Positions 6,686 to 57,804 of a stretch of DNA of 64,000 nt are shown one piece after another. Position numbers and translations under genes: made by a program. Below the pieces are notes generated by a model that was not told where the DNA came from, did no database searches, and was given only the letters and a program-made list of their open reading frames with translations. This DNA is from Oopsacas minuta (Eukaryota; Animalia; Porifera): positions 62,001 to 126,000 of the forward strand of contig JAKMXF010000188.1 in assembly GCA_024704765.1 (NCBI GenBank). The letters run 5' to 3'. Within the stretch, counting starts at the first letter, position 1. Each line of letters begins with the position of its first letter.

Positions 6686-7320
6686 TCTATATATGTGTGT
6701 GTGTGTGTATAAGTTTGTATGTCCAGAATTGATTGCAGAATCTGGAAGACCCCAAGGCTGATTTTTGACTTACAGGGGTATTTTGGGCCTGGCTCGGACA
6801 AGTTCGAGTCTTGGACGAAATTCACATCTATGACTAAATTATGACGTCATTGTCACCTTTTTGATGTTTGAAAAATCACGTTATTAACAACTGCTCAGCC
6901 AATATACATGATAGAAGTTTGAAATTTGAATCACAGGTACCCCTCAATGTGACAAATGCCCTGACCTTATGATTCTGACCAAACCTAACTCATCATGGGA
7001 TTATTACTTCATCATGACTGTACAAATTTCGAATAATTTCAGACTTTCTTAATACCCAAGGCACATAGTGTCGAGATTACTAACCAAAAGCGACATAGCA
7101 TCTCCAGTGTCACCACAGAAGGCCATTGTAGGTTATTAGGATGGACCATGGATAATAAAATCTTAAATTTTCACTATTCTGTCAGTTCGAGGCATGTAGT
7201 GCAGTGTATATTCTGTCGCGTAGCGACCAATAACACTATAAAATTTAGTTGTTCAATTCTTAAGCTAACTTGAACCACTAAGCTGTCGCGCAGCTACCTA
7301 GAAAGCGAAGCGGGCTTGTG
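6686..7320 (+). mobile_element. Helitron-like non-autonomous element with (TG)n
   Basis: TCTATATAT(GT)n start and CTAGAAAGCGAAGCGGGCT end; an inverted partial copy lies at about 46630-46950. Confidence 0.5.
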
Positions 7321-20004: not shown

Positions 20005-20465
20005 ATGCGTGTCCGTACTCGGGCCTACGGCCCTCGAATACATAAACTAATAATCTTAACCGTAGCAAACATGAAACTGCCATAATCTTTAATTCTGCTT
20101 ACTTTATTTCCCCAAAAGTGAACAAATATTTATGAAATGTTGTTTACAATATCATATTTGGACTCAGCATACTCGATTACCTCAGTATAACCATTGAAAG
20201 TATGTTTCTACCACAAATTTGAAATTTGTTTACTTTATATTCATAAAAATAACATTAAATTCACATATGGTTAATCCAAAAGTGTGAAAATCGGATTCAG
20301 CATATTTGATATGTTTAGTGAAGTTTTATTGAATTCTATTTACTTCCTTGATAAACACGATAAATACATAGTTATGCGATAATTTCAAAATTGCATACCG
20401 TAAATCCTTTCCTTGACAACGGACAAACAAACACAAACAAACAACAATAGAGATTTAATAATATA
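20005..20465 (-). mobile_element. Helitron-like repeat copy
   Basis: Hairpin end CTCGGGCCTACGGCCCTCG as at about 4520; the other end TATATTAAATCTC...(GTTT)n GTCCGTTGTCAAGGAAAGGATTT (reverse) as at 52780-52860. Confidence 0.6.
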
Positions 20466-33023: not shown

Positions 33024-33109
33024 ATGGCAATGAATGGTAGTGCTACGATAAGACAAGCTTACAATTCTCTTCAAGAACTGATGAAGATGGGAATTTCAAA
33101 ACAACGTTC
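33024..33109 (+). CDS. UBASH3: UBASH3 exon 1 (UBA start)
   Basis: [28 protein letters not shown]; LMKMGI is a UBA MGF-like motif; GTAAGT donor. Confidence 0.8.
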
Positions 33110-36100
33110 GTAAGTCTAATAAGAGTGTGTAAGAATGTTTTGAGGGGATCTCTCATTATATATACTCTTGGATGTATATCATACGATGTTTGTTTGTTGA
33201 TTTCATTGATAGGTAGAGCTGGTAGATCGCATCACTGTAAATGTAGGAACAAGGAGTAGTCCGGGTCCTTTATCGGGCGAGAGGATTTGCAAGTTCTCTT
33301 TATTTAGGGATTGTTTCAAGCTGGCTAGGAGTTTGGAATATCTGTTATATGTGGGTTGTTTTTGTTTTGTGGGTTTGAAGGATGTGAGAGGTGGTTGATT
33401 TTCCTTTAGGTTGAGAATTTCCTGAAATGATGTTAAGAAAGGGTTGCCTTGATCCTCTTGGGGTTGCTGGAATGTTAGGCCATGTTTCAACAGTTCCTGT
33501 AGGGTTAGACCGGTCTTTATGTTTGCTGTTTGGTGTAGGAAGACTGGCGGAGCTTTGTGTTCCCAGGTGGATGGAAAGAGTTTTGGTTCTGTGACTAGGA
33601 TAGGTGTCATGTAGGTCCGATTGGCCTGGGCTAGTTTATGATAGTTTGTAGTTAGGTCTGAGCAAAGGTTACAATTGTGATTGGTGTAGATGTCATGTAG
33701 TAGGTAAGGAGAGATGGCGCTTAGCACTCCTTCCTGAAACAAAAGGGGTGCACGAGCTTGGGAGGAGTGATAGGTTTGTTTGGATAGTAAATTCGTCATT
33801 CCTCCATATAGATTTAGTGACGTGGTCAAGGTGGCTGTAAGATCCGTTCTGGTATTGTGCAGTTTTTTCTTTTGGGTATGTCTTGTTAGCTGTAGAGCAT
33901 CCGTTATGTTTGTATTGATTTTAGGTGTTCGGTCTCTTCCAAATTTCCCGCAGATTTGATTGCCTTACATGGGTCTATCAGCTGTGGGTATAGCTTCGAT
34001 TGCCCGTGTTGTTTTGTTTTGTTAGGTGCCACTTTGTATAATGCGGATCTCTTTTCTGGGTGGTGTGCCAGGGGACAGCGTTTAATCTCCGGCTGAGATT
34101 GAGGCGTTTAGCTGTGATATATCTGGTAGCTCGTCAAAGTATTTAGAGTTCCGGGGTGGGCGGGCAATTGGTGTCCCTGTTGAGGAGTTAGGTAACTCAT
34201 TGTTGGGTGTGGAGGCGTTAGCTGGCCTCGTGTTCTTGCTGGTGGTCCCCTTGGTTAGTGGTGATGAACTATTAAGGCGGACCTACTAGCGGTCGGTGTA
34301 GCAGACTTCACCTTACACCCGGCCGGAGGTGAGTGCGGGAATTTTTTGCTTGGTATAGCAGTCATTCTTAGTTGCACTATTAAGAATTAGGATTTTTCAA
34401 ATAAAATAATAACGAATTTTACAGAGAAGAATAAATACAGAAATGCAAATTACTAAAACTTTTTCGCCTATTAAAAGGCTTTACAGTTGTGTCTTGGTTG
34501 TAGATTTTAATTGTGATTTGGCGCCTAATTGTGCCATAATTATCTCTTTGCTGTGTCGTGTGGTTCAAACACCTGGGCTTCTAACTATTTTACCCGAAAC
34601 GAAATGGTTAGCTTAAACCTGTTTCAAATGTAGGGTAATTGTATATCAGCTATCAGTTCATAGGCCATTGACTGAAATGATTTCTATATCAGTATACCCT
34701 CGATTATCCGAACACCTTCGTCATACACTTTCAATTTTAGTGTTCTGATAAGTGAAATAGTGTATTTTCATATAAGAAATTTACAGCTTAGGATCTGAAA
34801 ATGAGCATTCGTATATTGGAATATTTGACTGCATATTTCTAATAATATTGGCTAAAATGATCACATCATTTCGAAAACCCTAGTACTAAAGTGCATCAAA
34901 TTTTAAATTTGAATAAATTAAATGTTTTTCCTGCAGTGCCGATAACCGATGTGCCGGATAATCGAGGGTCTACTGTACCTTAAAGTTGAAATATACTATG
35001 GACAGGGGACTGTAGTGCAGGGGAGCGGCGCTACGCCACTAATTTCAAAGAGATACGTACCGCGTTTAATCGTTAATTCTACTTTATGAGGTTAGTCACT
35101 CAATGCTTCACCTGTAATATATATTTCTCCGTTTGCTATTGTTAAATAAAATCACTCAAATTTACATATGAGAAACTTAAATGCGAAATTCGGATTCCTG
35201 ATAATTGATTAACACATTAAGACAGTTGAAACCAAGTTTCTGGGACTATTTAGAAATTTGTTCACTTTGTACACCTAAACAACAACAAATACTCACTATT
35301 TGTTGTTAACAAAATCATAATTGAAATCGGGTTAACCGATTACCCCATTACAATCATTGAAAACAAGTTTCTGAACCAATTAAGAATTTATTTACTATAT
35401 TCATAAAAACAACAATAAATTTACATATGAGAAACTTGAAATGCGAAATTCGAAATCAGCGAATTTGTTACCCCATCCATTATAGCCGTTGAGAGCAAGT
35501 CTCTAAGTTATTTTAAGATTTCAACTTGTTTACTTTATATTCATAAACACAACAAATAAATTTAGATAAATTTATGTAAACTTATTGGGGATAAGCCGTA
35601 CACTCGGTTAGTACGTTCTAAATTTGGTTCCCTAGGGAATACGTGTACGTCTTATCCGAGTTCTATTGTATTAACACACTATTCTTTATAGTGAGAAGGC
35701 TATTGCTGCTACAGGAGATGTGGGAGTGGAAGATGCTGCTACATGGTAGGTTATTATATTGAATTATAAAATGTACTAGTTAAGAATATAGTCAGAGACC
35801 TTATTGTGAAACCACACGGGACCAAAATTCCTGTACAATATAATAGAGACTTCATTATAAGGGAACTTAATTTTAAGAGAGTGATATTGAGCGACATTGA
35901 TTGTATTTGTACTAATCTGTAGAATCCTCTGATACACTATAGCACCCAGGGCGGTCTGAAGTGGGGGGGACGATCTGGTTATAAAATACTATACAGTGGA
36001 GTCTCCCAAAATGGACATTCCGAGAAGCGAACAACCTCGTGGCACGAATTGAATTTGCCAAGCATATAATTACTACTTAAGCGTCTCCGACTAGCGGATA

Positions 36101-39100
36101 ATTCTCTACAACGGACAGATAACATGTCCCCAACGTGTCCGTTATTCGGAGACTCCACTGTATAACATGTGTAATTACCATCTTAGGATTTTAAATCATT
36201 TGAATGATCAAGACCTAGAGAAGGTTAAGCACAGAGAATATGTAGTGTACTTAGTACCTACAGGACCTCTTCTGAGTGAACTAAACTCATTCATGGCATC
36301 TAGCATAGAACAGTGCGGCAGGAACGGAGCACACAAAACCTTCCCACACACAACTCTGTGTAAATTCTTCACTGTAAGTTTACATTAGATGTTTATTCAT
36401 AAGAATTATTTTTGATTACATTCCACTTTATATATTTTGTGAACATCTTGAAATTTCTAATATGAAAATTTGTACATATTTACCACAGTCAGGCCCACAG
36501 GATCTTGTTTATAATAAGATTCATATAGGAGAATTTCATTTATCCGCATATTATGGGAGTTATTGCTTTCAATAGCTACTTGGTTCATAATAGAATGTTC
36601 ATTATAAGCGGGTTCATAATAAGTGATCCTGACTGTATATGTACATTTTAGGGATAGATTTGAGACCGGGGTCGAGTATAACTTTAAAATAACTCTTCAT
36701 ATTGACGGTTGATCATATTTCACTTACTCAATCTAAGTTTGCTATATCCTAGAGATTATATTCCAATAGCATAATAACTGAGTAAAGAATAACTCCGAGC
36801 TTCATCCTTCACTCCCGATCTGAGAGACATACATTTTATGATATAATAAGTAATTACGTACAAAAATAATAATATTCTAATTACATCAATATACACTACA
36901 TATAAAGTGATAAGTTATTACCATCACCAGTCTAGTGATATTATAGCTCTATAGCGTGTGAGAGATCCATAAACATATCAGATATATCCAGGAAGCTAAA
37001 CAGCTCGTATAGCTCTGTATTAAGATAGGAGCTGTGAAATAGAATAGTTGGTATAGGAGGATAACACCTAGGCATACAATCCTTCTTAAACCCTAGATGT
37101 AGTCTGATACATGTCCAGAAGAATAAGAACCGTTTAACTATATACTGTAGAGTATCATCAGTACACAGCTGTTTGTATGATAGAGGTAGGTTAGGTAGAC
37201 TAGACAGTGTACTGAAAGCTATGTCTTCTACTTGTGTTATTAGTTCTAAGGCTGTATGAGCTAGCTTAGTACTGATTGACTGTATGCTACAGATTAGACA
37301 GAGACCTGAGAGAGGAGAGGAGAGGAAGAGGGTCAGGAGACCGCCTCCCCGTGTCATGGTATTCTCTATAGTAGTGGGGTAATGAGGAGGGGACATTATA
37401 CAAATGAAGGGTTGGTGGAACCTGTCAGGGAATGAGAGCTCAGTCTGTGAGAGGAATCCTGGGCAGTCTATCAGAAGAAATAAAGGTCGACGTAGAAAAG
37501 GATAGATATCTTCCATGAACAGCTGATCATGTTGTTGTAGAGGTATGCTACTACTATTCTTATGTACTGGCAGGAGAATAGAGTTTGTAGTGTAACTGGG
37601 GTGAAGCTCACCTGTTTGTTGGATAGAGCTATATGATGAAGAGTAAGCAGTAGATTCTCCTGATATGTATAGCAATAAAGCTTGATGAGGTGATAGTGTA
37701 TTAGATATACCAGACAATACTTCTATGAGAGAGATAGTACTGATCTTATGGATATGTGTTATCATAGTCTCTATCCCGTCTTCTCTTGTTACTCTATGTA
37801 GTAGACTATTCATCCTGTAATGGTCTATTGTGTAGTCTATCAGTTTGCTCTGTTTAGTGTTACCTCCCACCAATACTGCCTGGCCTAGAGAGAATGTGAT
37901 AGTGTCAGAGCGAGCAGGAGTGTGAGCAGGTAAGGTTTGGAAGGGAGATATTTCTAATAATGTGTCATCTTCAATTGGTAGGCAGACGTATGACAAGAAT
38001 GAACTGAATTCTGACAGTACATGTGCATACTCTTCAGGTACACTCTCTCCCTTACCACTTGATGTCTTTTGGATAATATCAGATAGTCGGGTAAGGTAAT
38101 CCTGTACTGAGCTGAAGTTTTCAAGAAAGAAAGATACCTGTATAGCTCTTGAGAAAGATCTCAGTTTCTTATGCATCAAATTACCTACATCAACTTCTGT
38201 CTGTACTTCCCAATCAAAATAATCTCTCTTTAGAATAGCGTTATAGAATGAGAATGATTCTCTTAGGAACTTAATCTGTGACGTATGTATATAGTAACTC
38301 ATATAAAGATGGGCTATACGGGATCCTATCTCACCGATTTGATAACGTCTCAGGTCTAAAGCCTGTCGCTGTTGCTGTTGGTATTGCCAGAGAATATCGA
38401 ATTGTGAGAATGCTTGAAAGAATAGAGATTTCCATCTAGTGCTGTCTGCTGTGTATGCAGGAAGTTGTAGTATTCTAGAGAATAGATCGTTACTGATACG
38501 ACATAGCTCGTCATATTTCATCACTACTTCTTTCGAATAGGTATTTTCTGGCTGTATAACCTTTGTAATATCTGGTGTATGTTCTATTTCTATTTCTTCT
38601 GTATCTTCTCCCAAATCGTCCTCTGATAAAGACTGTGCTTCCATATCTGTGTTAGGCAATTAATTGTTAGCTAGATCACCTGCTTGACTTGGAAGGCACC
38701 TGCAAAAACAACTGACGGTGACAGTTGTTTGTTGCCTGGCCTTAGGATAGATTAACCTATGCTATTCAGGCATAATACCTGTTTGACAAGCCATGCTTAC
38801 AGTTTTGTGAACATTATTAGTTTATTACCTCGTTAAGAGAGACACCTAGTTGTAAGTCTGAATCTATGTAACTGTTACAAATTGTAGAGCAGAAATGGCC
38901 GACATGTGCGACAATTGCAAGTTGAAATTAACAAAACGATGAGGGAAAATTCGAAGAATAAAATGTTTTCCTTTCGTTTAAGACCTAAAGTCAGGGTTGC
39001 CGTTGGAACGGAATACACAAATATCGTCATTATTGTTATTAATTCATCATTACTCAATGCATAAATTCAGCTACACCGTAAGTATATAATCTAGCTAATA

Positions 39101-42100
39101 AGACAAACATAAATGAATTTGCTTCGTCTAGCATTTGCATACCAAATTTGGCTTAAGTTTTTATTAATCCACCAATTTTTCCGCTGATGCGTCAGAAAAT
39201 AATGAAACTATGATGATACAAAGAACCGCCCGCCCGCATGCATGCTCAGGTGGATCTTATATTGAGCTGAAACAATATTACCATTAAGAGTGTCCTTAAT
39301 TAAAAGCCTAGTGACCGCATGGCCAAGTCTATAATATTACAATGAAGAAGTGTTGACCGAATTTCCTCCGCTGAATCGGGTTAATCAGCACGGTATACCT
39401 GGAGATAACCCTAATTGTTTCGTAAAAATATGGAAGAGTTTGATTTCCCATAGACATATAAATATATTATAAGTCTGGCTCAGATTATTTTAAGATTGGC
39501 CAGATTCAATAATTCAAGAATCATATAATTTTCAATATTTCACAAAATCAATTTCAGTTTAACAACAACAGTACAACAAAGCATGAGAATATAAAATGTA
39601 CAAAGTTCGATAATTTATTCTAAATAATGTAAATAGTTAGAAAAAAAAACAGAATGCTCTGAGCAAGAACGAACTTTCTGGATTGTGTAATACAAGCAAA
39701 ACTTGTTTAGAATTCAAACAAGCAGCAAATACAGTACAAAAACAATTAATCTAGCCGTACTAGTTGGTTTGCCTCCTCTTCAATGGTTTTAACAATGCCT
39801 GAGTAATCCATCCATGATTTGAACTCTTATATATCCATTTATGCTGCATTTTCCCATCATCAGAATATACGTAATTCGTATAAAGGTTTGGGACCTCTTC
39901 ATCAGATGCTAGACTACCTTCATTAATCCTTTTAACATTACTAATAATTAAGTTATGTTCTTCATCAACCAGCAATAGACTGAAACCAATATCTAGACTG
40001 AGAGGTACAATAGCTCTGACAACATCTCCTCTCCAGTTAAATATCTGTACTGCATATAGACTGTTCTTATACAAAACACAGAAATAGGTTAATTCATATG
40101 ACGTTCCTACTATCTTAACATCCAGTACCGAAGGGAAATCTTTGATATCTGGAGAGTGTAACATTATATCTCCTTCTCTTATATCTTTTATTTTAGTCAA
40201 TGTATCAAGGGTACAGCATTTAGTCCATAATTTATGATTATTTTGGAACCACAAATGGTTAGATTATTGGTATCAATCTTCTTCAAGTCAAAGATAAACG
40301 GTGAATTCCAATCCTGTTTGGTGTAGAATTCCTTATTGGGCTTATTTACATTCGTGAGTACTTTGGAGATAGTTTGACTATCAATCGGATTCATCTTTGA
40401 GATGCACAGCTGTACATTCCTGTAATCTAAAGTAGACACAGTATAATTCATAAATTCTTGCTGATTCGGAGATGTCAGACAATTGGAGAGCAGATTTCAA
40501 ACATTTACAGGAAAAAGCCTAACAATAGTCTGTAACACCTTTCTATTGAAATCAAATACGTTTTACTTTGTACATTCGTAAAACGGAGTACAGGGGGGAC
40601 TTAAATGTTAACAGTCACGACGAAATTCAGAATTATTTTAGAACTTTCGTTTCAACAGCTAGTTATGGGGTAATTGCATGATTATTATTGGGAATCATTA
40701 ACATAAATTTGAGGAGACAGGGGGCATAGCCCCTCTGAAAAGAACACAACAAACAACCCCGAGCTGAACTACTGTCGATTGACATTTTAGTGCAGCTCCT
40801 ATAGGAAGATGCCCTAATAGCATGTACAATGTACGACGTCCGTAAGTCCGTCCGTCCGTCCGCGTGGCCGTTCGAAATCTAGCAGTACGATTAATGTGAA
40901 AATTGGTATACATTTGGTTCCGAGATTAACACCTCAGGTACGATTTTCTAAAGTGAATATTTCACACCTTTCTATTTAAACTCCTAGCATGCTAGAGATT
41001 AGGTTTCAATCTGTCGTGATAATTGGGTGCGTAGAGTCCAAATTTTGAGATTTTCAGAGCCTGAAAGTAACAATTTCACAGATTTATCATATGATTAATC
41101 ATATTTCACACTGTATTCCAACATGATGCTAGAGATTTCGTGCTTGTCAGGGTTATTGAGTATGTAGATTCCAATTTTGATATTTTCGAATAACCATCAA
41201 CATGATGGTTATTTAAAATATCAAAATTGGTACTTATATTTTGATCATAAACTTTGTATTGATCATATTTTTATCACTTCACGACATATAATTTGCATTG
41301 GGTATAAATATATATGACCCAGATGACTGAGCTGGACTCCCAGTCCGAAAACTGGTACGGCGTGGCTGGACCACATTCGAATACTTCTGGCTAGAGTGGA
41401 GGGATGTTAATTCATATAATCGGGACAGTTAAGTGTAACCACGCATAATTAAATAAAGAGTTATATACCTATAATGGGGAGATGGCATCCTATGAAGGTG
41501 ATAATAAGAATCAATCCAAATTCATCAAGGGGAATTTGGTAGAGATGGTTTTCATCAATGTTGAACATCTGAATCCGTCTGTTACCAGCGTCTGCAACAT
41601 ACATACGATCTGTTCTAGGATCTATAGTTAATCCTACTGGTCTGTTCACCTGTGTTCTCTCTGATCCGGGACGTATTTTCTCCCATAACAATTCATGCTT
41701 AGCCTTGTATGAGTCTAATATATCTTTACCTTCAGACTATGCATGCATTCTCTATAGCATTCTCACACTCACTAGTGTTCGATTTCAGATACTTTTTCGA
41801 ATAAACCTGTTTTTCTATTCTAATTATCTGGTTTTGTATGTTGTCATATGCTGCAGCGAGTGTAGAAGCTAACTGGCGATCTTTCATGCTTTCTATTAGG
41901 TTTACTCTAGTCCTGTGTAGGTTGTCTAGGTGATCAGCATGAGGATGTCTATGAGAGTTCCTTTTATTGTCCAGACTTTGTATAATGCTCTCTTATTTAT
42001 CATCCAACTTTTTATGAAGGAATTTTAATTTATCTCTCACAGTTCTCTTCTGAGTTACGATATGTGAACTAGTGAAGTGATGAGATGTCTCCTGTATAGA

Positions 42101-48100: not shown

Positions 48101-51100
48101 GTGCGTGTAAAAATGCGCATTGGGGATCAGCGATGGGATTTAGTATATTATACAGGAAATAGTTTTTTAGGTAGGACACTTATAAGAAATAATCATTTTA
48201 TTTAATGTAAATGCAATGCAGAATAATACCTAATAAGAATGCGTAAAAATTATGTAAAGTATATAGTTGGCTGACCAACTGGACAGTACTTGAGAGTATG
48301 TGCATCATCCCCAGTAGCTCCACACTGAGTACACACAGTTTCTCTCAGATAAGGACATTCCACTCTACCAATAGAGTCTCTAAGACGATGTGACTTCTGA
48401 ATAGGTACACATCTCTTACTCTTCTGGCAGAAGACACAGAATCGAACCTTAGCGTACTCATCCTTCTTGAGCGCAGCTCTCTGTCTCTGTAGACACAGAG
48501 AGTATTGAATAGAGCTAAGGATAGGAGAGTCATCAGAGTCTGTATCTGTATCAGTTAATACAAGTTCCGTTGGTACAAACGGAGCAGCCAGTGGGTTTAA
48601 GGTTGATTGAATTGTAGAGACAGTCACTGTAGTTATGACGTCAGCTAATCCAAAGTAGTTGTTGAAGGGAGAATAGTTGTTTGTTTGTCGAGACATGAAA
48701 AGTTTTGTATTGTTGATTGTGATTGTTTTGATTTGATATTATTGGTAACTTTCTCTCCATTTTATACAAATGATTTATTGAAATTGACATTAATTGACAA
48801 TATTATCTGATAGATGTCAAATCTGTTTCATAAGCTAGTTAATTTGGTTGCCAATGCATGTCATATTGATCATAATTATTTTGACATGAATTAATGTAAT
48901 TTACAAATTATCAACAGAGAAACAATTTCTCACGATGTAGAGCTGTGTTGAGAGATTTTTTCTATTAGATTGAGTCATCGAATCCAATTTATCTTCTTTT
49001 GTTATCACAATGTAATATAATAAATGCTAATTTTACAAAATTTTAAAATAAGTAATATATAAACTATGTAGATAATCTTGATAAGAGAATGATAATAATA
49101 TTAATAGTAAATTGAATAATATTTGTATAAAACTTATAACAAACTGACTAATGTATTAAGCTATGCTAGTCTTAAAAATTATATGTAAAATAAAGAAATT
49201 GTTAGCGAAAAATAAATTAGTTATTTTAAGAAATTTTGTATAAAACCTTTAACATCCGAAATATTAATATAAATTTATTAATAGACTACTATATCATACA
49301 GATAGGAGAGTAGCCGGGCAACGAATAAAAAAGAGGCCATTTATATAAAAAATCTCATAAAAGTTAAAAATGTAAGGAATCAGTTAAGACTACCTAAAAA
49401 GTTCAAACGGCCATCTTTCATCTCGTTTAGGCGCCATTTATGCGATGACGTTAGCATTTATATAATTTGACTATTTTCTCAAATATTTTTGTAAAAAATG
49501 TATTTTATTTAACTTTATGCTAATGTTGTTTGAATTCGTACATGTTCTTCACACAAAGTTAAATTCATGTTTAAAGATAGTTTATTGAAGAAAAATTTCT
49601 GAATTATACCATAGAAATGAAAATAATATATTTATCAAAATATGATTTGAAGATGTGATCCGAATTCTATTCTAAAGAAAACGTGCTAATTCTTTATACC
49701 ATATGAATAAATAGAGGACATTAATTCATTGAAATACAAGAATTACAAAAAGTAAAAAAATTCTATTTTCGATGAGGATTTGTGTGAATTTTGATGTCGT
49801 GATTTGAATGCGCCTAAACGAGATGAAGGATTACCGTTTGAACTTTTTAGGTAGTCTTAACTGATTCCTTACATTTTCTAACCCTAAAAAGTTCAATTCA
49901 CAAATTTGAAGGGTTAATTTAACTTTTATGAGATTATACAAATGACTTCTCTTTTTTATTCGTTGCTCGGCTACTTTCCTATCTGTGTTATGTAGTAGTC
50001 TATGATTTATCTTATAAAGAATTAACAGTATCTAAGGCCATGAAAATATTATTTGTTTGTCATATCCGCTCGGACAATAATTCATGTATTTTATCGTTAC
50101 AAAGTGAATATTTAACATCTACATACAATCTAATACAAATAGAAATAAATATATAATATACTGTAGCCCCGATTTCCTAGAAAATCATAATGATAATCAA
50201 GTGCTTTACTTTAAATGGCCTAAAATACTAAATTTATGAATATTTAAGACAGTAACATTACTGTTCTTATTACAACGACCGCCACAATAAGTTTCCACAA
50301 TTTTGATATGCTCCAGATCTCGAGGGGACTTCAAATAAGGATTTTCTGATAAAATGACAAAATCTGCGAATTTCCCAACCCTAAGACTGCCTATCTTTTC
50401 TTCCATGAACAATTGCCAAGCAGGACCTATTGTATATGCTTTAATAGCCTCATGAACTGATATACACTGATCCTGTCCAAATACATGTTCTTTCCCCTTC
50501 TCACATCTAGTCACAGCTGTCTGCATGTTGATGAGAGGTAATGGAGGTCCTGATATAGCAGGGCTATCCTGATGTATAGATATATATCTATTGTATTTTA
50601 TAGCAGATGCTAGAGGTGCCCATCTATTAGTTCTCTCCCTGCCTAATATGTATTCGCTAAGAGTTCTACCATAATAATACAAATGATAAACAAATAAAGA
50701 TAGAGCTACTCCAATCTTCCCACAACGGGTAAGCTGCTGCTCTGTAGCTAGACCCAGGTGTTCTAGCCTGTGTCTACTATCAATACTATTCCCTGAAGTT
50801 AATGTCTCGTATATCCTCAATACTTGCTCAATAGCTCTCTCTCCCTGTGTGTGTACAGCTATCTGTACACCTAGTCTATGGTAATGCTCTATCTTATCTC
50901 GTAAGAGACTGGTTTCATACTTCAAGACACCGTAATTAGGGGGAGGAGGGAAGGATAGGGGTTCAGCTAGTGATGTATGCAACAGAGGTTCTCGTGTTGC
51001 CACTGTTCCTGTATGTGGTGACCCGTCTGCCCATAATTTAACTCCAGCTATCCAGAGCTTGTCAGGATTTGGGGAATCTAACTTATGAATTTCTTCATCT

Positions 51101-52796
51101 CTCTCCTCCCCCATTATTCCTTGATACAATGCTATTCGTATCGGACAATCCTCTCTCATAGCAATCTGTTTAATCAGTCTGTCCGTATTTTCATTAGGTA
51201 TGTATGCTAACTCCGTTACAGTTGTGAAGCCTCGAAAAGAGTAATCTAACCAAGTGCTCCATAGAGCATCCCTCTGTTCATCTTCTGACAGAGATAATAC
51301 ATTGAAGATTAACTTAATATTACCGTCTATAATCTGTCCAGTAAAGTGATCCCCTGTCTTACCCGAGTATTTGTCTCCCTTTACCTTACAGATCTCTGGG
51401 TCAATCAATTCAAACACTCTATGGTTAACCCAAGAACAGTGGAAACTCTGTGTTGATATGATAATAGGTATTAATGCAGAGAAATTGGAATTGATATAGT
51501 CGGCACTTAACTTAGGAAGATTAGGAAATAATTCAGCATCCCATCCATAGAAAATACAGCATACAGGTACCAGACTATTCTCAGTAATTGTTATAGCCTT
51601 ATTAACCTCGCTACTAATTCTATGTATTATGTCATCAGCTGATTTGAAGTGGTATGCACCAATGTCTATACATTTACTAGATAGTACAGCTCTTAATATA
51701 GCGTGCTGATGTGCCTCAATGAATCCGGGGAAGAGAGATTTATTGTTCAGGAAAATAACTTCAGTTGACTCTCCTACATACTGCATTACGTCAGATAGTT
51801 TTCCCAAAGCTGATATCTTACTACCAGTTACAGCCACAGCCTCTACACTGGGATAAGACTCTTCGAGAGTGAATATGTTTCCTCCAAATAAAATTTTATC
51901 CGCTCTAACCAATTCACCAGCCATCATATAGGGCTAGCAGATGCAGATATTGCTATAGCATATTGTAGATATCGGTATAGTGCTATTTAAGTTACTTCAG
52001 TAAAGTCCCCGTCAATTAACAATAATATTTTATTGGGTATACCGTAGTGATAATGGCAGCCGTAATATTACAATTATTTTGCTTTATTTTATCAAAAATG
52101 CGTTTAAAAAACTTAGATAGTATGTGTCCCAGTAACCAGGGGCATCACTAAGGGTGTAACCCGGACACGTGTCCTAATCCTTAAGCATCGCATCGTAGGG
52201 GCCACTTGTAAATGACGTAATACATTCCATCCGACATCTTTTTCTCAAGAATTGAATGTTTACGCAGGATGGAATATCATATTTTAGTTTTTAGTATTTT
52301 GAATAAAAACACTGCTTCAGTTAGTATAAATAACATTAAGTATTATTGAGTACACATTTCGACTGTCCCTTGTCTTTCGTATTAATTCGAGTGAGATCTT
52401 TGTCAATTGAATTTGTTTTCGTTTCTTTGAAAAAAACATCTAAACGACTAATTACTCTGCAAAGAATACCCGTCTCTACATTTGTAGGCAAACAATTTAG
52501 TCAGACCTGTACAATCGTACGATAGATATTTGGAGTTTATGAGTCCTTTTATTCTCTAATACAGCTATATTGGGGTAACAAAGTACGCTGAATCTGAATT
52601 TCACATTTTCAAGTTTATCATATGGAAAAGTTGTTGTTTTTATGAACATAAAGTAAACAAATAGTTGAAATATATATATATATATTAATTCATTTTGCAA
52701 TTTTATACTTTGCCAGATTCGGGCACGAAGTGCCAAGTTCCATGCGAACACAAAGTGTTCGCAAGCGAAGCGGCTCAGTCTATATTATTAAAACTC

Positions 52797-52837
<41 letters not shown>

Positions 52838-55800
52838 TCCGTTGTCAAGGAAAGGATTTAACAATTTTCAAAGCGATGTGATAGTGACTGGATATAACTG
52901 GAGTTGACTGTATGCCAATTATTTAATTATGATACATTTACACTTAAAATTATTTCATAATAACAGATTACAAGTGTTAAAACAATAAATATTATATCAT
53001 CACCAGTATAAGTAATTTGAATTGAAGTCCACACGATTAGTCCACCAGCAATAATATCGTGATGATACATACAATTAGTAAATTATTAATGAATATAAAG
53101 TGTTAAAATAACGTGATATGAAGGTCTGCTTTAAGATTGCAATTTAAGACACATTTTAATCATAAATCAACGTAAAATATGTTGTTCATAGGCTACTACA
53201 TAATGTAGGAGCAAGTTGTGTTGGAGAACTGTTTCTGTATGTTATCCTGTGTGAATTTGAGAAATGCGACATATTGTTCGTTTAGCTTCTCAGACAGAGC
53301 CTGGCCATACTGCTCCCTCAATTTCTCCTCGTTCTCATGTAGCAGTCGACTACAGATGGTCTCTACCTGTTTCAGAGTGAATAGTGGCTGGTCACGAGAT
53401 GAGGTTGCTGGAGGTGTGTGGCAATTAATGCTGGTGAGAGGGGGATTAGTTACGGATAGTGAGTGATGGGGGGTAGGGGCAACTAGAGGGGTACATGTGG
53501 GTAATTGATGCGATGTAGAAGGACCAAATGATAGTTGGTTTCTGTGTTTTAATCGTTTTACTTCGTCTTGTAAGTTGATACGTATAAATTCCTCGCTATC
53601 AATAGATTCAGTCTCTGGAAAGAGTTGCATATAGTCCGTGGTTTTTCTTGGACTCTCGCAAGTATCCAGCTCGTTCTGTCGGAAACGGAGGATCCTTCTT
53701 CTTCTCTTCTCAGCAGCACTTCTCCAGGGAGACAGTCCAGCTAAAGAGGAGCATCTTGAGCGTTTGTGGGAGGGAGAGCTGGAGTCTGTATCTCCGTAAA
53801 AAGACAAATCAATAGATCGTTTTATCGTAGCGCAGGCCATAATAGTAAAATCTAATCCTAACTAAAATGAAGAGAATTATCAAATCCGATAAAAAGCTAT
53901 ATTTATACTCGAGCAGATAGTAATTTGAGACAAATTACTTTAAGAGTTGTATGTTATCATGATGGAGAAGAGTTGAGCAATTGGAATAACTATACATTAA
54001 TGAAAGAGAAATTCAATAGACTTGAGCAATTATGACTATTTAATAATGGTAGAGGTTTCCTGTGAAAGCAAGTTGGGGGTAATAATATTCAGACGTATCT
54101 TGCATCATTGAAAGTACATGAAATTTAGTATACATACAAGTTATCTCTAAATATACAAGTATATACGTATTGCTAGATCATATTATAGACTATCAATACA
54201 CCTAACAGTAACTAATTCATGAATATTTATTTAATTAGCATAAGATTTTAGCGAATCCTGAAATCTAATGAGAAGATTGAAATTATTTGGGATCTACCAG
54301 TGGTTGGTGTATGGTGCTTTGCCAAAAAACGAAGTGGAGGGCGCTCCCTATTGAATTTAAACCATTTTAGACAAACTCGATGAAATCAGCCCCCCATAAA
54401 ACCACTGGGATCTAACGATTCTTTGCAGAGATACATACAATTTTATTTGAGGTACGTACTTGAGTAAATATATTGATTCTTTGGTTAATAGATAGTTGAG
54501 GTCGCAACATGCCGAGTTTGGGCCCGGACCGACGCATACCTACAACATGGTTTAGAATATTTTCTAAAATTGAATAAAGAATTGATAAACCAGTTCGTAG
54601 TACGGTCAGAAAATGTGATCGAATACAAATTTCAATGATGATTTAGCATTGAAATTTGTATTCGATCACATTAGATAGTGATTAATTAAATGACTCATCT
54701 ATTCAAATAACTACTTGTAATATTTCTGAATAATCTAGAAGTGTGGGGGATGCTTATGATTAACTTATCAGGTCTTATTTGCTCAGTCATTTTATGAGCG
54801 CATTATTTCACAATTTATTGATAAATTCATCTCAGTTCCACAAGACTCTGGCAGGACGTACTTGTGCAGCGTATTTTGTCATTACTTATATACATACAGT
54901 GGAACCGCGCTTATACGAACACCAACGGACGGTCAAAATTTGTTCGCGTTCGTATTTACCGGAGTAATATCAATTGGAAAACCATAGTAGGAACCTGACT
55001 TTGTGTAAATATTCGTTCATCTTATCCGGAAATTCGTATTAACGAGTTTCCACAGTAGTTGATTTATAATTATTCAATTTGCAGGAGACTCAATGTTTAA
55101 TTGTATAACGTGGTAGACGAAGCACTAGTTGCAAATTTAGTTTCACTGTTTCAGTAGCTACATGATTGAAAAAAATTACATTAGAATATTTAATACTACG
55201 TATTCCAATAATTATGATAGTCTTCCAACGGCGAAACTTGATTCGGGTAGTAGAGCTGGATAAAGCGATTTCCCAACCAAAAGTGATATAATATTATCGA
55301 ATTATCCTACACATTGTCTTAAGAAATGATAAAGAACGTTATCAATAGCATTAATGGTGAATATTACGAGAATATTCTACCACTGAATTTATAGACTTAT
55401 TGATACATACAGTAGACTCTCGGTATTACGCTACTGTACGCTTGGTGGAAACGATTCGGTTAATTAGTTTGTATTTATTTTAACTATAGTACTTACTATT
55501 CATTTATTGATGATAATAGCATTGTTAGGGATTGATATACAATGTTTATCGCTTATAAGAACATATCAAGTATAAGAACCACCCTCGGGAACACGGTTTA
55601 CATATCCTCTTGTATAATTGATACCTGTTATAGAACATATTTTGTTACTCCCAAGGGTGTTCTTAATTCTTACGAGCGATAAGCACTGTAATGTATATAG
55701 TACAAGTATTAGACATTAATATCATCAGAAACGGTGCTATACTACAGGGGCATTGTGCTGTCATGTAAGACGGGTATTAGACCCCTGCCTGTTGATTTGT

Positions 55801-57607
55801 CGTTCAGGTACCGTCAACAAGATCGGAACATTGCACATTGTTATTCCGTATTACATCAGCCGAACTATAATTGAGTTTATTAATAATAGGGCATATACTT
55901 CAATTTTGACTACTAACTGCATACGTATTAATATCCAGAATTAATTACATTATGTTTAGATATATCGGGTAATATACGAGTATTCCCGACAGAAGGAGGA
56001 GGATCTGGAGTTGTTGAAGGAAGATTATGTGTTTATGACAGAACTAGATTTGCAAAGAGGCACGAGTAAAGGCTGGTTCTATGGTACTTCATGGCAGAGA
56101 GGACTCACTGGATTATTTCCAGGGAATTATGTAGAAGTAGCACCTGAATCTGACTGCTGGGTGTTACACAGGTACAATACATAAATAGAATTACACAAAC
56201 TATAACTGTAATTAGAATAATTCCTAAGTGCAAGTATATACCACATTGATTAGCTTAGTTAAATTCTATATTATTCCAACTCAGAAAATTTGACACTATG
56301 AACCAGGTTGGATAAGATTTCATAACATCATATATTCTGCGAACACTTGCTGTGTTACAACTTCGAATTGGTGCTCCCATGAGTATACGAGGTAGGCGAT
56401 TAATATTAGTAATTACTACTGGAGGATACTAAATAATTGTATTCTACAATTTAAATGTCATAAATCATCGCCTACTGAAATATAGCTTATACTGTATTCC
56501 TAGTTAGCTATTCCACACACTAGTAAGTGAGGGAAGAGATTATTCTACTGATAAGAAATACGATAACATTATTATCGTAATAATACTTGTATAACCTCCA
56601 GGACTTGTTACTTATACAACAAGAATGAAGTAGTCCCTCAGTTCAGAAAGACCCTGAAGAAGAAACAAGCTCACGAGTATGAGGAAGCTCAGACCGCCTA
56701 TCAGTCAGATGACCTGCTAGCCAAGTCTCATGTCTACTCTAAAGTGAAGAGGGTAGATAAACCACACGTTAAGACTCAGCAATCTGTTCCCTCACCTGTC
56801 CCGAAGCCACAGGGACCAAACAGGATATTTATCTTCAGGCATGCGGAAAGAGTTGATGCTACCTTCGGACAGAATTGGATACGGTGTTCGTTTGACAAAG
56901 AAGGTAACTATGAAAGGAAGAACTTAAATATGCCTATTAGCTTGCCGAAGAGAGAAGGAGGCCCTGAGAAGTACAATAAAGATTCTCCAATTACCATGAT
57001 GGGACAGTTTCAATCTAGGATAACCGGGGAGGGAATGAGGGACGAAGGAGTTAGGATAACACATGCATTCTCCTCTCCATCTCTTAGATGTGTACAGACA
57101 GCACAACATATCCTGGAGGGAATAGGAGCAGAGAGAAGTGTAGGGATTAATGTGGAACCAGGACTGTTTGAGTGGATGGCATGGGCTAGAGGGAAGATAC
57201 CAGACTGGATGAAGCCAGAGGACTTGTTAATCAGCGGTCTGAATGTAGATAGAAGCTACAAGTATATTGAGCACCCGAATAACTTGTCACTGGAGGAGAG
57301 AGCAGATGACTATTATAGGAGGAGTTATGACGTCATCAGGAAGATAATACATTATATCCCTAGTAATACAGCTAGTGATGTTCTAATACTAGCTCATGCG
57401 GGGTCTCTTGACGCACTGAGTAGGATGCTAATCGGACAGCTACCTAGGAGTGCGCAGGAACTGACACAATACACACAGCAGGTACCGTATGCAGGATGCT
57501 GTATGCTGGAGGAGGCGGAGGGAGGATGGAAACTAACTCCGCCACCTTTCAACACACTGATACACGGACCTAATAAGAAGTTCGACTGGAGAGACATGAT
57601 GCTATGA
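33024..57607 (+). CDS. UBASH3: UBASH3/Sts-family protein (UBA, 2H phosphoesterase, SH3, histidine phosphatase); 7 exons, 636 aa
   Basis: Exons 33024-33109, 35692-35745, 36187-36373, 46410-46605, 46989-47158, 55960-56171 and 56602-57607. All introns are GT-AG, phases are 2,2,0,1,0,2 and total CDS is 1911 nt. The translation follows the UBASH3B domain order colinearly. Confidence 0.93.
33200..34400 (-). mobile_element. Decayed retroelement-like ORF, possibly Penelope-like, in UBASH3 intron 1
   Basis: C/A-rich interrupted reading frame; [24 protein letters not shown] resembles the (A)DKG motif that precedes Penelope-type RT; RT core not seen. Confidence 0.35.
34690..34975. mobile_element. Tigger/pogo-like MITE
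   Basis: TIRs CAGTATACCCTCGATTATCCG / CGGATAATCGAGGGTCTACTG followed by TA; second copy at 42563-42854. Confidence 0.75.
35100..35560. mobile_element. Helitron-like modular repeat copy
   Basis: Tandem modules AAATTTACATATGAGAAACTTGAAATGCGAAATTCG shared with about 2700-3000, 5780-5900 and 61300-61400. Confidence 0.55.
35692..35745 (+). CDS. UBASH3: UBASH3 exon 2 (54 nt, UBA end)
   Basis: (S)[17 protein letters not shown](W); TTTATAG acceptor and GTAGGT donor. Confidence 0.85.
35994..36160. mobile_element. Tigger/pogo-like MITE in UBASH3 intron 2
   Basis: TIRs CAGTGGAGTCTCC / GGAGACTCCACTG with TA on both sides. Confidence 0.8.
36187..36373 (+). CDS. UBASH3: UBASH3 exon 3 (2H phosphoesterase, first HxT)
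   Basis: [13 protein letters not shown]...[20 protein letters not shown]; GTAAGT donor. Confidence 0.92.
36941..38644 (-). CDS. SCAI: SCAI (suppressor of cancer cell invasion) homologue, single exon, nested in UBASH3 intron 3
   Basis: [55 protein letters not shown] and [12 protein letters not shown] match SCAI; ATG at 38644 has an in-frame TAA 18 nt upstream. Confidence 0.88.
   Translation of the reverse strand: MEAQSLSEDDLGEDTEEIEIEHTPDITKVIQPENTYSKEVVMKYDELCRISNDLFSRILQLPAYTADSTRWKSLFFQAFSQFDILWQYQQQQRQALDLRRYQIGEIGSRIAHLYMSYYIHTSQIKFLRESFSFYNAILKRDYFDWEVQTEVDVGNLMHKKLRSFSRAIQVSFFLENFSSVQDYLTRLSDIIQKTSSGKGESVPEEYAHVLSEFSSFLSYVCLPIEDDTLLEISPFQTLPAHTPARSDTITFSLGQAVLVGGNTKQSKLIDYTIDHYRMNSLLHRVTREDGIETMITHIHKISTISLIEVLSGISNTLSPHQALLLYISGESTAYSSSYSSIQQTGELHPSYTTNSILLPVHKNSSSIPLQQHDQLFMEDIYPFLRRPLFLLIDCPGFLSQTELSFPDRFHQPFICIMSPPHYPTTIENTMTRGGGLLTLFLSSPLSGLCLICSIQSISTKLAHTALELITQVEDIAFSTLSSLPNLPLSYKQLCTDDTLQYIVKRFLFFWTCIRLHLGFKKDCMPRCYPPIPTILFHSSYLNTELYELFSFLDISDMFMDLSHAIEL
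39760..40451 (-). pseudogene. Frameshifted beta-propeller-like (NHL-type) coding remnant
   Basis: Two overlapping ORFs in different frames; [16 protein letters not shown] and [13 protein letters not shown] resemble NHL blades. Confidence 0.4.
40783..41250 (+). mobile_element. Helentron/DINE-1-like repeat with (GTCC)n
   Basis: TTTTAGTGCAGCTCC...GTCCGTCCGTCCGTCC...GAAATCTAGCAGT matches 17085-17300. Confidence 0.55.
41461..42274 (-). pseudogene. Coiled-coil plus NHL-repeat (TRIM2/3-like C-terminus) pseudogene
   Basis: In-frame TAA at 41993-41995 inside the helical region, a frameshift near 41710, then the NHL blade [38 protein letters not shown]. Confidence 0.65.
42563..42854. mobile_element. 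Tigger/pogo-like MITE, second copy
   Basis: Same termini and internal sequence as 34690-34975. Confidence 0.7.
43094..43935. mobile_element. Long-TIR element (arms about 170 bp)
   Basis: 43094-~43265 is the near-exact reverse complement of ~43765-43935. Confidence 0.85.
44104..44801. mobile_element. TIR element (Tc1/pogo-like MITE)
   Basis: Perfect 25-bp TIR CAGTGAAACCTGCATAAACCGACAC; internal TTTGGACTAA repeats. Confidence 0.8.
45326..45541 (-). CDS. RPS28: 40S ribosomal protein S28 (eS28), single exon, nested in UBASH3 intron 3
   Basis: [25 protein letters not shown]...[30 protein letters not shown]; ATG at 45541. Confidence 0.97.
45657..46130. repeat. Diverged inverted repeat (arms about 150 bp)
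   Basis: ~45660-45805 pairs with ~45972-46130 in reverse complement, with many mismatches. Confidence 0.7.
46410..46605 (+). CDS. UBASH3: UBASH3 exon 4
   Basis: CKDSLMAT...[28 protein letters not shown]; phase-0 acceptor TTTTAG continues exon 3 (FFT|CKDS, compare vertebrate FFM|CEDS). Confidence 0.88.
46989..47158 (+). CDS. UBASH3: UBASH3 exon 5 (second HxT)
   Basis: [16 protein letters not shown]...[16 protein letters not shown]. Confidence 0.92.
47675..48052 (-). CDS. TMEM234: Transmembrane protein 234, single exon, nested in UBASH3 intron 5
   Basis: [28 protein letters not shown] and SAVPLAN; four hydrophobic helices; 125 aa. Confidence 0.88.
   Translation of the reverse strand: MELLSIGLLSLVALLWGVTNPLLRSASSGLNNNKSTSITGQVGSDLWYLLTNISYWLVFGINQLGSLLFYWTLGRVSISSAVPLANAGTLVVTLLTEECIGTRINRLYSYVGVVFVGIGIYLCVL
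48250..48696 (-). CDS. NANOS: Nanos, single exon, nested in UBASH3 intron 5
   Basis: Tandem CCHC finger FCVFCQKSK...[38 protein letters not shown]; N-terminal [12 protein letters not shown] resembles the NOT1-interacting motif. Confidence 0.95.
   Translation of the reverse strand: MSRQTNNYSPFNNYFGLADVITTVTVSTIQSTLNPLAAPFVPTELVLTDTDTDSDDSPILSSIQYSLCLQRQRAALKKDEYAKVRFCVFCQKSKRCVPIQKSHRLRDSIGRVECPYLRETVCTQCGATGDDAHTLKYCPVGQPTIYFT
49281..50003. mobile_element. Long-TIR element (arms about 170-210 bp)
   Basis: 49281-~49450 pairs with ~49795-50003; TA-flanked; a related fragment lies at about 30305-30360. Confidence 0.8.
50206..51927 (-). CDS. Amidohydrolase family 3 (YtcJ-like) metallohydrolase, single exon, 573 aa, nested in UBASH3 intron 5
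   Basis: PGFIEAHQH (HxH), [41 protein letters not shown] and [18 protein letters not shown] fit the YtcJ-like pattern. Confidence 0.88.
   Translation of the reverse strand: MMAGELVRADKILFGGNIFTLEESYPSVEAVAVTGSKISALGKLSDVMQYVGESTEVIFLNNKSLFPGFIEAHQHAILRAVLSSKCIDIGAYHFKSADDIIHRISSEVNKAITITENSLVPVCCIFYGWDAELFPNLPKLSADYINSNFSALIPIIISTQSFHCSWVNHRVFELIDPEICKVKGDKYSGKTGDHFTGQIIDGNIKLIFNVLSLSEDEQRDALWSTWLDYSFRGFTTVTELAYIPNENTDRLIKQIAMREDCPIRIALYQGIMGEERDEEIHKLDSPNPDKLWIAGVKLWADGSPHTGTVATREPLLHTSLAEPLSFPPPPNYGVLKYETSLLRDKIEHYHRLGVQIAVHTQGERAIEQVLRIYETLTSGNSIDSRHRLEHLGLATEQQLTRCGKIGVALSLFVYHLYYYGRTLSEYILGRERTNRWAPLASAIKYNRYISIHQDSPAISGPPLPLINMQTAVTRCEKGKEHVFGQDQCISVHEAIKAYTIGPAWQLFMEEKIGSLRVGKFADFVILSENPYLKSPRDLEHIKIVETYCGGRCNKNSNVTVLNIHKFSILGHLK
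52560..52865 (+). mobile_element. Two Helitron-like elements joined head-to-tail, with (GT)n
   Basis: Hairpin-rich 3' end ...GCGAAGCGGCTCAGT runs directly into CTATATTATTAAAACTCGATT(GT)n. Confidence 0.6.
53196..53840 (-). CDS. AKIRIN: Akirin, single exon, nested in UBASH3 intron 5
   Basis: [17 protein letters not shown] and [28 protein letters not shown]...[14 protein letters not shown]. Confidence 0.95.
   Translation of the reverse strand: MACATIKRSIDLSFYGDTDSSSPSHKRSRCSSLAGLSPWRSAAEKRRRRILRFRQNELDTCESPRKTTDYMQLFPETESIDSEEFIRINLQDEVKRLKHRNQLSFGPSTSHQLPTCTPLVAPTPHHSLSVTNPPLTSINCHTPPATSSRDQPLFTLKQVETICSRLLHENEEKLREQYGQALSEKLNEQYVAFLKFTQDNIQKQFSNTTCSYIM
54298..54407. mobile_element. Small hAT-type MITE
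   Basis: TIRs CAGTGGTT / AACCACTG; flanks GGATCTAC / GGATCTAA (7/8 TSD). Confidence 0.6.
54897..55055. mobile_element. Tigger/pogo-like MITE
   Basis: TA-CAGTGGAACCGCGCTTATACG ... TAACGAGTTTCCACAG-TA. Confidence 0.6.
55960..56171 (+). CDS. UBASH3: UBASH3 exon 6 (SH3); absent from the ORF track
   Basis: [26 protein letters not shown]...[33 protein letters not shown]. Confidence 0.93.
56602..57607 (+). CDS. UBASH3: UBASH3 exon 7 (histidine phosphatase domain)
   Basis: [30 protein letters not shown] and [10 protein letters not shown]; the frame is open from the phase-2 acceptor at 56601. Confidence 0.95.
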
Positions 57608-57804
57608 GTCTGTGTTTTATTCCTTTATATATGTAAATAAACTGAATTGGATTCTTTGTAAATTTAGAATGCATTGAGTGTTATGTGTGTTATCGTTTGT
57701 TTTATTTTGAATTAAATCATTGAAATTTTTACTCATCGCATTCGAGATATTTTGTGTATAATAATTACCTGCAAAATTGACCTAAATAGTTAGATTTTCA
57801 TATT

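Follow-up and report, generated by a model that had tools for sequence, protein, structure and literature searches.

When the coding fragments of a single conserved protein are scattered over some 24.6 kb of DNA, with complete genes on the opposite strand lying between them, the question arises whether the fragments are exons of one gene that hosts the others in its introns, or pieces of separate loci that happen to lie in a row. The stretch of glass-sponge DNA analysed here (64,000 nucleotides, AT-rich; hereafter the window) poses this question at positions 33024-57607. A preliminary description of the window had assigned this interval to a UBASH3 gene with six intact antisense guests in two giant introns, and had called the arrangement an extreme gene-within-gene architecture. 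Very likely, as we will argue, the locus is one cis-spliced UBASH3 orthologue, two of whose ancestral introns have become gene-dense with six independent, single-exon genes of the minus strand. In what follows we reconstruct the host, describe its guests, compare the locus with its counterparts in related assemblies and in other animals, and weigh the RNA evidence on which the choice between one gene and several depends.

The Host Gene

Exon boundaries were located by tblastn with a 644-aa Sycon-type UBASH3 homologue (P0003) and were then read base by base. The search gave seven collinear plus-strand matches between 33003 and 57598, which cover residues 1-642 of the query in order. Exon 1 (33024-33109) carries the start codon and the first part of the UBA domain and is followed by a donor GT at 33110, and the remainder of the UBA is supplied by exon 2 (35692-35745), which at 54 nt falls below the size limit of the ORF list. 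The first H-x-T motif of the 2H phosphoesterase lies in exon 3 (36187-36373) and the second in exon 5 (46989-47158), with exon 4 (46410-46605) between them. Exon 6 (55960-56171) encodes the SH3 domain, and exon 7 (56602-57607) the linker, the entire histidine-phosphatase domain and the stop codon. All seven lie on the plus strand; together they comprise 1911 nt that translate into 636 aa and a stop, with no internal stop codons, and the six introns are GT-AG with consistent phases. Two of these introns are giant: intron 3 (36374-46409) measures 10,036 nt and intron 5 (47159-55959) 8,801 nt, both running from GT to AG in phase 0. The others measure 2582 nt (intron 1), 441 nt (intron 2), 383 nt (intron 4, 46606-46988) and 430 nt (intron 6). 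The protein length, the outer limits and the sizes of the giant introns that had been reported for this gene are reproduced exactly by the rebuilt exons.

The protein so assembled aligns from end to end with its homologues. Residues 6-634 (of 636) match residues 13-642 of the 644-aa calcareous-sponge UBASH3 at 44.8% identity, and, in the comparison with UBASH3B that had been suggested, residues 4-636 align with the zebrafish protein at 38.9% identity. In a multiple alignment, PHTTL (exon 3) and LHLTL (exon 5) match the 2H H-x-T motifs of homologues with PF02834 or PF13563, and the phosphatase motifs RHAER and AHAGSLD (the latter with the second catalytic histidine) are present and aligned with those of homologues. 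Exon 7 gave a Pfam match to His_Phos_1 (50.1 bits, cut-off 21.7), and the top matches in a search of 1.84 billion proteins with this exon are UBASH3-type proteins. The exon 6 piece, being only partial, scored 26.7 bits against SH3_9 and so stayed below the curated cut-off (30); the isolated 2H exon pieces and the UBA piece gave no Pfam match of their own. The domain order UBA-2H-SH3-PGM was found by collinear alignment to the 644-aa homologue, which carries PF00627, PF22562 and PF14604. In domain order, catalytic motifs and end-to-end alignment, the host is therefore like UBASH3A and UBASH3B (Sts-2 and Sts-1, TULA) and the insect ecdysteroid-phosphate phosphatase. Set against UBASH3A/B, the protein has nothing unusual about it, and the difference lies in gene structure only.

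That structure has consequences for annotation. Among the best 120 matches to the 644-aa Sycon-type query there is no full-length glass-sponge UBASH3 model. The preliminary description had predicted that ORF-style gene callers would split the host, and in the relatives the last exon has indeed been called alone, as a protein of 344-351 aa. The best match of the representative search, P0001 (345 aa, 59% identity), was considered as a possible transcript of another glass sponge and rejected: its 1,146-nt contig has upstream stops and is without SH3 coding, and it is therefore unspliced or genomic and uninformative on splicing.

The ORFs of the window lie on the plus strand up to 30 kb and on the minus strand from 57.8 kb onward; the host therefore marks a change of strand and is interwoven with a run of minus-strand genes. 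Its stop codon (57607) is separated by 198 nt from the stop (57805) of a convergent minus-strand gene for a mitochondrial-type EF-G. The host has poly(A)-type hexamers at 57636 and 57711, EF-G has them at 57706 and 57621, and since the two sets interleave, the 3' UTRs of the two genes probably overlap. One further minus-strand ORF of 208 aa with a TTG start lies in intron 1 (33203-33829), where the GC skew is strong (0.18). As it gave no Pfam match and no blastn match in the relatives, it is probably not a gene and is left out of the guest count; in one of these (contig L007, below) host exons 1 and 2 are only ~200 nt apart.

The Guests in Introns 3 and 5

Each of the six guests is one uninterrupted ORF, antisense to the host, and all six fall inside the two intervals that are spliced out of it as introns 3 and 5. 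Intron 3 contains SCAI and ribosomal protein S28e (RPS28). The former occupies 36941-38644 on the minus strand and encodes 567 aa from its first ATG, although the listed ORF extends to 38659, a TTG five codons earlier (PF12070, 265.6 bits); the latter, at 45326-45541 on the minus strand, encodes 71 aa from the first ATG of an ORF listed to 45556 (PF01200, 103.9 bits). The remaining four, likewise on the minus strand, lie in intron 5. These are TMEM234 (47675-48052, 125 aa; PF10639, 106.8 bits), nanos (48250-48696, 148 aa with a CCHC zinc-finger pair; PF05741, zf-nanos, 65.5 bits), a YtcJ-like Amidohydro_3 amidohydrolase (50206-51924, listed ORF to 51927, 572 aa; PF07969, 194.1 bits) and akirin (53196-53840, 214 aa). 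For the first five, the Pfam matches are full-length and all over the gathering score. Akirin gave no Pfam match and was tentatively assigned by language-model features: its atlas feature score is 0.97 to the Akirin-2, Akirin and Akirin-1 clusters, with 230 of 256 features shared and 51 of 100 hits in the Akirin set. Akirins are marked by a conserved nuclear-localisation region at the N-terminus and a helix at the C-terminus, and both ends of the guest protein seem to resemble those of human AKIRIN2. ORFs, Pfam (for five of them), RNA contigs (over four) and synteny agree in supporting the earlier claim of six intact antisense guests whose coding sequences are without introns.

Six coding genes in 18.8 kb of intron amount to approximately one per 3 kb, near the overall gene density of the genome. 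Poly(A)-type hexamers are found downstream of each guest on the guest's own strand, though such hexamers are common in AT-rich DNA. Those of SCAI lie 24 nt from host exon 3 and those of TMEM234 ~60-150 nt from host exon 5, so close that the 3' ends of these two guests may abut or overlap the host exons.

As a count of intact guests, the number six holds; as a complete inventory it does not, because two decayed antisense ORFs in intron 3 had been overlooked. The first (39670-40451, minus strand) is a homologue of a 248-aa gene in a relative and survives as overlapping ORFs of 84 and 164 aa, the alignment crossing a stop. The second (41488-42097, minus strand) is a homologue of a relative's 274-aa gene with a weak NHL repeat, and it has a frameshift near 41734 and several stops. 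A search for tRNA and Rfam families between 30 and 60 kb found none, and thus no RNA-gene guests.

Repeats are also present in the introns. Intron 5 contains a MITE-like foldback of ~750 bp (49268-50016) whose arms (49268-49434 and 49810-50016) are ~70% identical. Its depth in the DNA-like sequencing runs described below (X1-X3) is 5-15 times the baseline, which marks it as a high-copy repeat; in the RNA-like run (X4) its depth is ~200. Two other stretches, 45097-45293 in the 3' flank of RPS28 and 46673-46869 in host intron 4, reach DNA-run depths of up to ~9,700 as against ~200. They have partial copies at 20381-20429 and 6775-6915 and look like small dispersed repeats. Finally, positions 54887-55043 hold a dispersed repeat of ~150 bp that is common to the species, with 76-81% identity to several places in the relatives' loci.

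Conservation of the Nest in Related Assemblies

The relatives compared here are contigs encoding amidohydrolase or SCAI homologues from four other public assemblies: ERZ25072740 (L003), ERZ25069837 (L004/L005 and L006/L007), ERZ25071281 (L008) and the more distant ERZ20067936 (L009). The top matches to the amidohydrolase and SCAI of the window in related assemblies are 54-68% identical. At least three or four of the related assemblies have the nest, with guest content that varies. The fullest arrangement is that of ERZ25069837, which reads EF-G; host exons 7 and 6; akirin, amidohydrolase, nanos and TMEM234; exons 5 and 4; RPS28, NHL-like genes, integrase fragments and SCAI; and exons 3 to 1, with gene order and strands the same as those of the window. 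This order is drawn from two parallel contigs that have the amidohydrolase-to-NHL stretch in common, the EF-G-to-akirin end being on ctg27550 only and the SCAI-to-exon 1 end on ctg27989 only. At the protein level, the host exons of this assembly are 80-98% and the guests 67-93% identical to those of the window. Its intron 3 measures ~21 kb by record coordinates and holds more ORFs than that of the window, and the host there consequently carries about ten guests. The additional contents of that intron (L005/L006 15500-18000 and L007 1600-8800) include retroelement integrase fragments (Integrase_H2C2), two near-identical NHL-like genes of 423 aa and an incomplete copy of the 248-aa gene, all of them signs of transposon-associated duplication within the intron.

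The other three assemblies each preserve part of the arrangement. ERZ25071281 has an NHL-like gene and SCAI followed by exons 3-1, and ERZ25072740 has EF-G, exons 7-6, akirin and amidohydrolase, followed by another, identical copy of akirin and by TMEM234. The two akirin copies of the latter assembly (L003 8447-9052 and 13802-14407) have identical scores and flank the amidohydrolase, the result either of a recent local duplication or of a duplication in the assembly. In ERZ20067936 the order is amidohydrolase, TMEM234, exons 5-4, RPS28 and SCAI; nanos is absent between amidohydrolase and TMEM234 on this contig, and the 10 kb past SCAI gave no matches to exons 1-3.

Considered singly, both the host exons and the guests are well conserved in place. 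Exon 1 is 96% identical at the amino acid level in L007 and L008, in both of which exon 2 is conserved as well, and exons 5 and 6 show 91-98% and 84-94% amino acid identity in relatives. SCAI has 68% amino acid identity in the same position in L007 and L008, RPS28 has 86-93% in relatives, the amidohydrolase 58-68% in the same place in L003, L004, L006 and L009, and akirin 67% in the same place in L003 and L004. TMEM234 is conserved in L003, L004, L006 and L009, and nanos is present in L004 and L006 and was not found in the fetched part of L003. In blastn comparisons of the window with the relatives, alignments are confined to host exons and guest coding sequences, the intron DNA being otherwise unalignable save for short dispersed repeats, which argues for purifying selection on all parts of the nest. 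With respect to its wider distribution, the best amidohydrolase homologue in Oopsacas minuta is a protein of 53% identity whose gene neighbourhood is unrelated and contains no further nest members within 10 kb. The nest may not be common to all hexactinellids, or this homologue may be a paralogue.

History of the Introns

The six host introns align at the same residues as the first six introns of the UBASH3B-like gene of the starfish Asterias rubens, which has thirteen exons and twelve introns, and introns 3 and 5 clearly have phase 0 like their starfish counterparts. Since these positions are common to the starfish orthologue, the host introns are ancestral, and it follows that the guests came to lie in introns that already existed. 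The six starfish introns situated 3' of these, where the linker and the phosphatase are encoded, are all missing from the glass sponge, which has retained the 5' six. In the calcareous sponge Sycon ciliatum, the orthologue (OZ025895.1, L010 3001-4917) has 1917 nt for 638 aa and is therefore a single-exon gene without introns, so that intron numbers in UBASH3 run from 0 in Sycon through 6 in the glass sponge to 12 in the starfish. The variable NHL-like content among relatives, together with the decayed copies in the window, indicates that intron 3 is still turning over.

This history bears on whether the nest as such is functional, the antisense guests either regulating the host by transcriptional interference or locking introns 3 and 5 against loss in a lineage from which most introns have disappeared. 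A role of this kind would accord with the antisense orientation of all guests and of both decayed ORFs, and with the persistence of introns 3 and 5 with their guests across relatives when six 3' Asterias introns are gone and the Sycon gene is intronless. However, the four small guest-free introns (1, 2, 4 and 6) have been kept equally, which makes locking unnecessary; the guest content differs among relatives, which argues against a fixed regulatory circuit; and published surveys have mostly reported weak or no correlation between host and guest expression (PMC3240667). A functional nest is on this evidence unlikely. The same doubt attaches to the broader proposal that guests lock ancestral introns, that intron 3 acts as a nursery of insertion, duplication and decay (the NHL-like ORFs and the integrase fragments of relatives being its products), and that nests, far from being passive by-products, drive which introns survive compaction; that the four empty introns have been retained equally well speaks against this proposal, and we give it a small chance. 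Guests that entered old introns of an otherwise ordinary gene, and are independent of it, are the reading with which we continue.

RNA Over the Guests

Expression was assessed in four runs (X1-X4) of one sample, available as unstranded unitig contigs from short reads, and coverage was read over 44900-50800. Runs X1-X3 are DNA-like, with exons and introns evenly covered. Run X4 is RNA-like: its word depth reaches ~74,000 on RPS28 and lies at 550-900 on host exons 4 and 5 and at 140-290 on TMEM234, nanos and the amidohydrolase, as against 3-8 in guest-free intron DNA. RPS28 shows no joints in X4, TMEM234 lies in a continuous X4 contig (47129-47978), nanos in another without joints (48042-49028), and the amidohydrolase in a contig from 50204 with a depth of 291. 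RNA is therefore seen over four of the six guests at a level far over that of the surrounding intron, in contigs that are unstranded. A transcript end was considered at 50204, where an X4 contig begins two bases past the amidohydrolase stop, and was rejected, as the 13 letters of Illumina adapter before it mark a library artefact. Unbroken RNA-like contigs cover 47129-49028, one leading from exon 5 into the TMEM234 coding sequence and the other crossing nanos from the start region of TMEM234. In these unstranded unitigs, guest transcripts seem to abut one another and host exon 5, and they may overlap.

These data are pertinent to the suspicion that some or all of the guests are dead retrocopies that only seem intact, with functional copies elsewhere. 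All six are intronless, the two further ORFs of intron 3 are visibly decayed, and the RNA coverage extends to only four guests, SCAI and akirin lying outside the stretch covered. Intronlessness, however, carries no signal here, because 63% of the transcripts counted in the main text of the Aphrocallistes vastus genome report are single-exon (12,409 of 19,578; PMC10282587). Dead copies would be hard to reconcile with the full-length Pfam matches, with intact orthologous ORFs that stand in place in the relatives at 58-93% amino acid identity amid unalignable intron DNA, or with the RNA over RPS28 (very deep), TMEM234, nanos and the amidohydrolase. We consider it quite improbable that the guests are dead retrocopies.

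Splicing of the Host

The joints of the host itself are found in the same RNA-like run. At intron 4, 383 nt bounded by GT and AG are skipped at a depth of 981 in X4, and this joint is absent from X1-X3. In X4, the 30 letters ahead of a contig start at 46410 are those of 36344-36373, the end of exon 3, and a second contig, which ends at 47158, continues into the 27 letters of 55960-55986, the start of exon 6; both additions are unique in the window. Each long junction is represented by one contig whose end was read, with no molecule across exons 1-7. Because these contig ends match distant exons, both giant-intron junctions are used, and the joints 36373^46410 and 47158^55960 foreseen in the preliminary description are thereby found in RNA.

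A joined product could also be made by trans-splicing, with exon groups 1-3, 4-5 and 6-7 as separate units. The contigs show the joined product and no precursor; spliced-leader trans-splicing occurs at a low level in A. vastus according to the main text of the genome report (PMC10282587); and a strongly expressed antisense RPS28 in intron 3 might hinder read-through. Against this, the exons are collinear and ordered on one strand, with canonical GT and AG at both giant introns, and introns 3 and 5 match the positions and phases of ordinary starfish cis-introns. Moreover, the RNA depth of 3-8 in guest-free intron DNA fits a pre-mRNA, and the arrangement is kept in several assemblies. Trans-splicing must accordingly be judged highly improbable. 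As to an assembly artefact, in which unrelated pieces were mis-joined between the exon groups, its probability is close to nil, given that the breaks of the short-read DNA unitigs at repeats (~46830-46850 and 49400-49970) coincide with high-copy repeats, as expected, that RNA joins host exons over both introns, and that the same order and orientation recur in independently assembled contigs of four other samples.

A Model of the Locus

With one cis-spliced gene and six independent guests as the best explanation, the workings of the locus can be sketched. The host would be transcribed as a single plus-strand pre-mRNA of ~24.6 kb and conventionally spliced, introns 3 and 5 being removed at their GT-AG sites. 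The guests would form separate minus-strand transcription units expressed on their own account, each presumably with a promoter and a poly(A) site to itself. Their antisense orientation may persist because guests on the same strand would add poly(A) and splice signals to the host pre-mRNA. The uniformity of this orientation fits a known bias, in that ~63% of human nested genes are antisense (PMC3192792). The nest itself probably arose in the hexactinellid lineage when genes were inserted or duplicated into introns already present, and the decayed guests here, along with the integrase fragments and additional NHL-like genes of a relative, would be marks of continued turnover.

The locus is of interest as a clean, RNA-verified and conserved multi-guest nest in an early-branching animal. 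Nanos, akirin and SCAI are guests that matter to the study of development, and a fourth, the very highly expressed RPS28, is transcribed head-on to the host. The locus is useful as a natural system for studies of transcriptional interference, as a test case for gene callers, given that the ORF-style calls in public collections split the host, and as a data point in intron history: ancestral positions are retained in the 5' half of the gene and missing from its 3' half, and Sycon has kept none of them.

Comparison With Known Nested Genes

The nearest point of comparison is the genome of the glass sponge A. vastus (Francis et al. 2023, PMC10282587), whose report gives in its main text a size of 80 Mb, 19,578 genes and 12,409 single-exon transcripts, and counts 2,432 nested genes, or 12.4% of all genes. 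According to the same text, many of these nests are conserved with Oopsacas minuta, and automatic annotation mishandles nests. Compactness, a dominance of single-exon genes and abundant nesting are thus features of that genome (PMC10282587). The main text gives counts and a glassin example, and does not describe the UBASH3 locus or the number of guests per host (PMC10282587). Published work already characterises glass-sponge genomes by their abundant nesting, and the locus therefore represents no novel form of genome organisation.

For mammals, 3-4 guests per host mark the 95th percentile, and the extremes are 77 in human and 186 in mouse (PMC11694760). Mammalian guests, like those of the UBASH3 nest, prefer long introns (PMC11694760, PMC3192792). 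Unlike the UBASH3 gene, however, mammalian hosts usually measure hundreds of kb, and many of their guests are non-coding.

The description of the UBASH3 nest as an extreme gene-within-gene architecture does not survive these comparisons, since nesting involves 12.4% of A. vastus genes, mammalian hosts reach 77 and 186 guests, Drosophila has clusters of nested genes and a relative of the window has a fuller nest. Six unrelated coding guests in one host are above average and not extreme, and intronless guests are the rule in this lineage. Closest in form are the Drosophila cases, namely the TipE/Teh cluster in the last intron of CG18675 and the cluster of GMC oxidoreductases in an intron of flotillin-2 (Flo-2), in which guest expression is uncoupled from that of the host (PMC3240667). 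Like the UBASH3 nest, these have several coding guests per intron and are long conserved. The Drosophila guests, however, are paralogous clusters produced by tandem duplication, whereas the six UBASH3 guests are mutually unrelated, and the one apparent duplicating family at this locus consists of the NHL-like ORFs of intron 3 and of the relatives.
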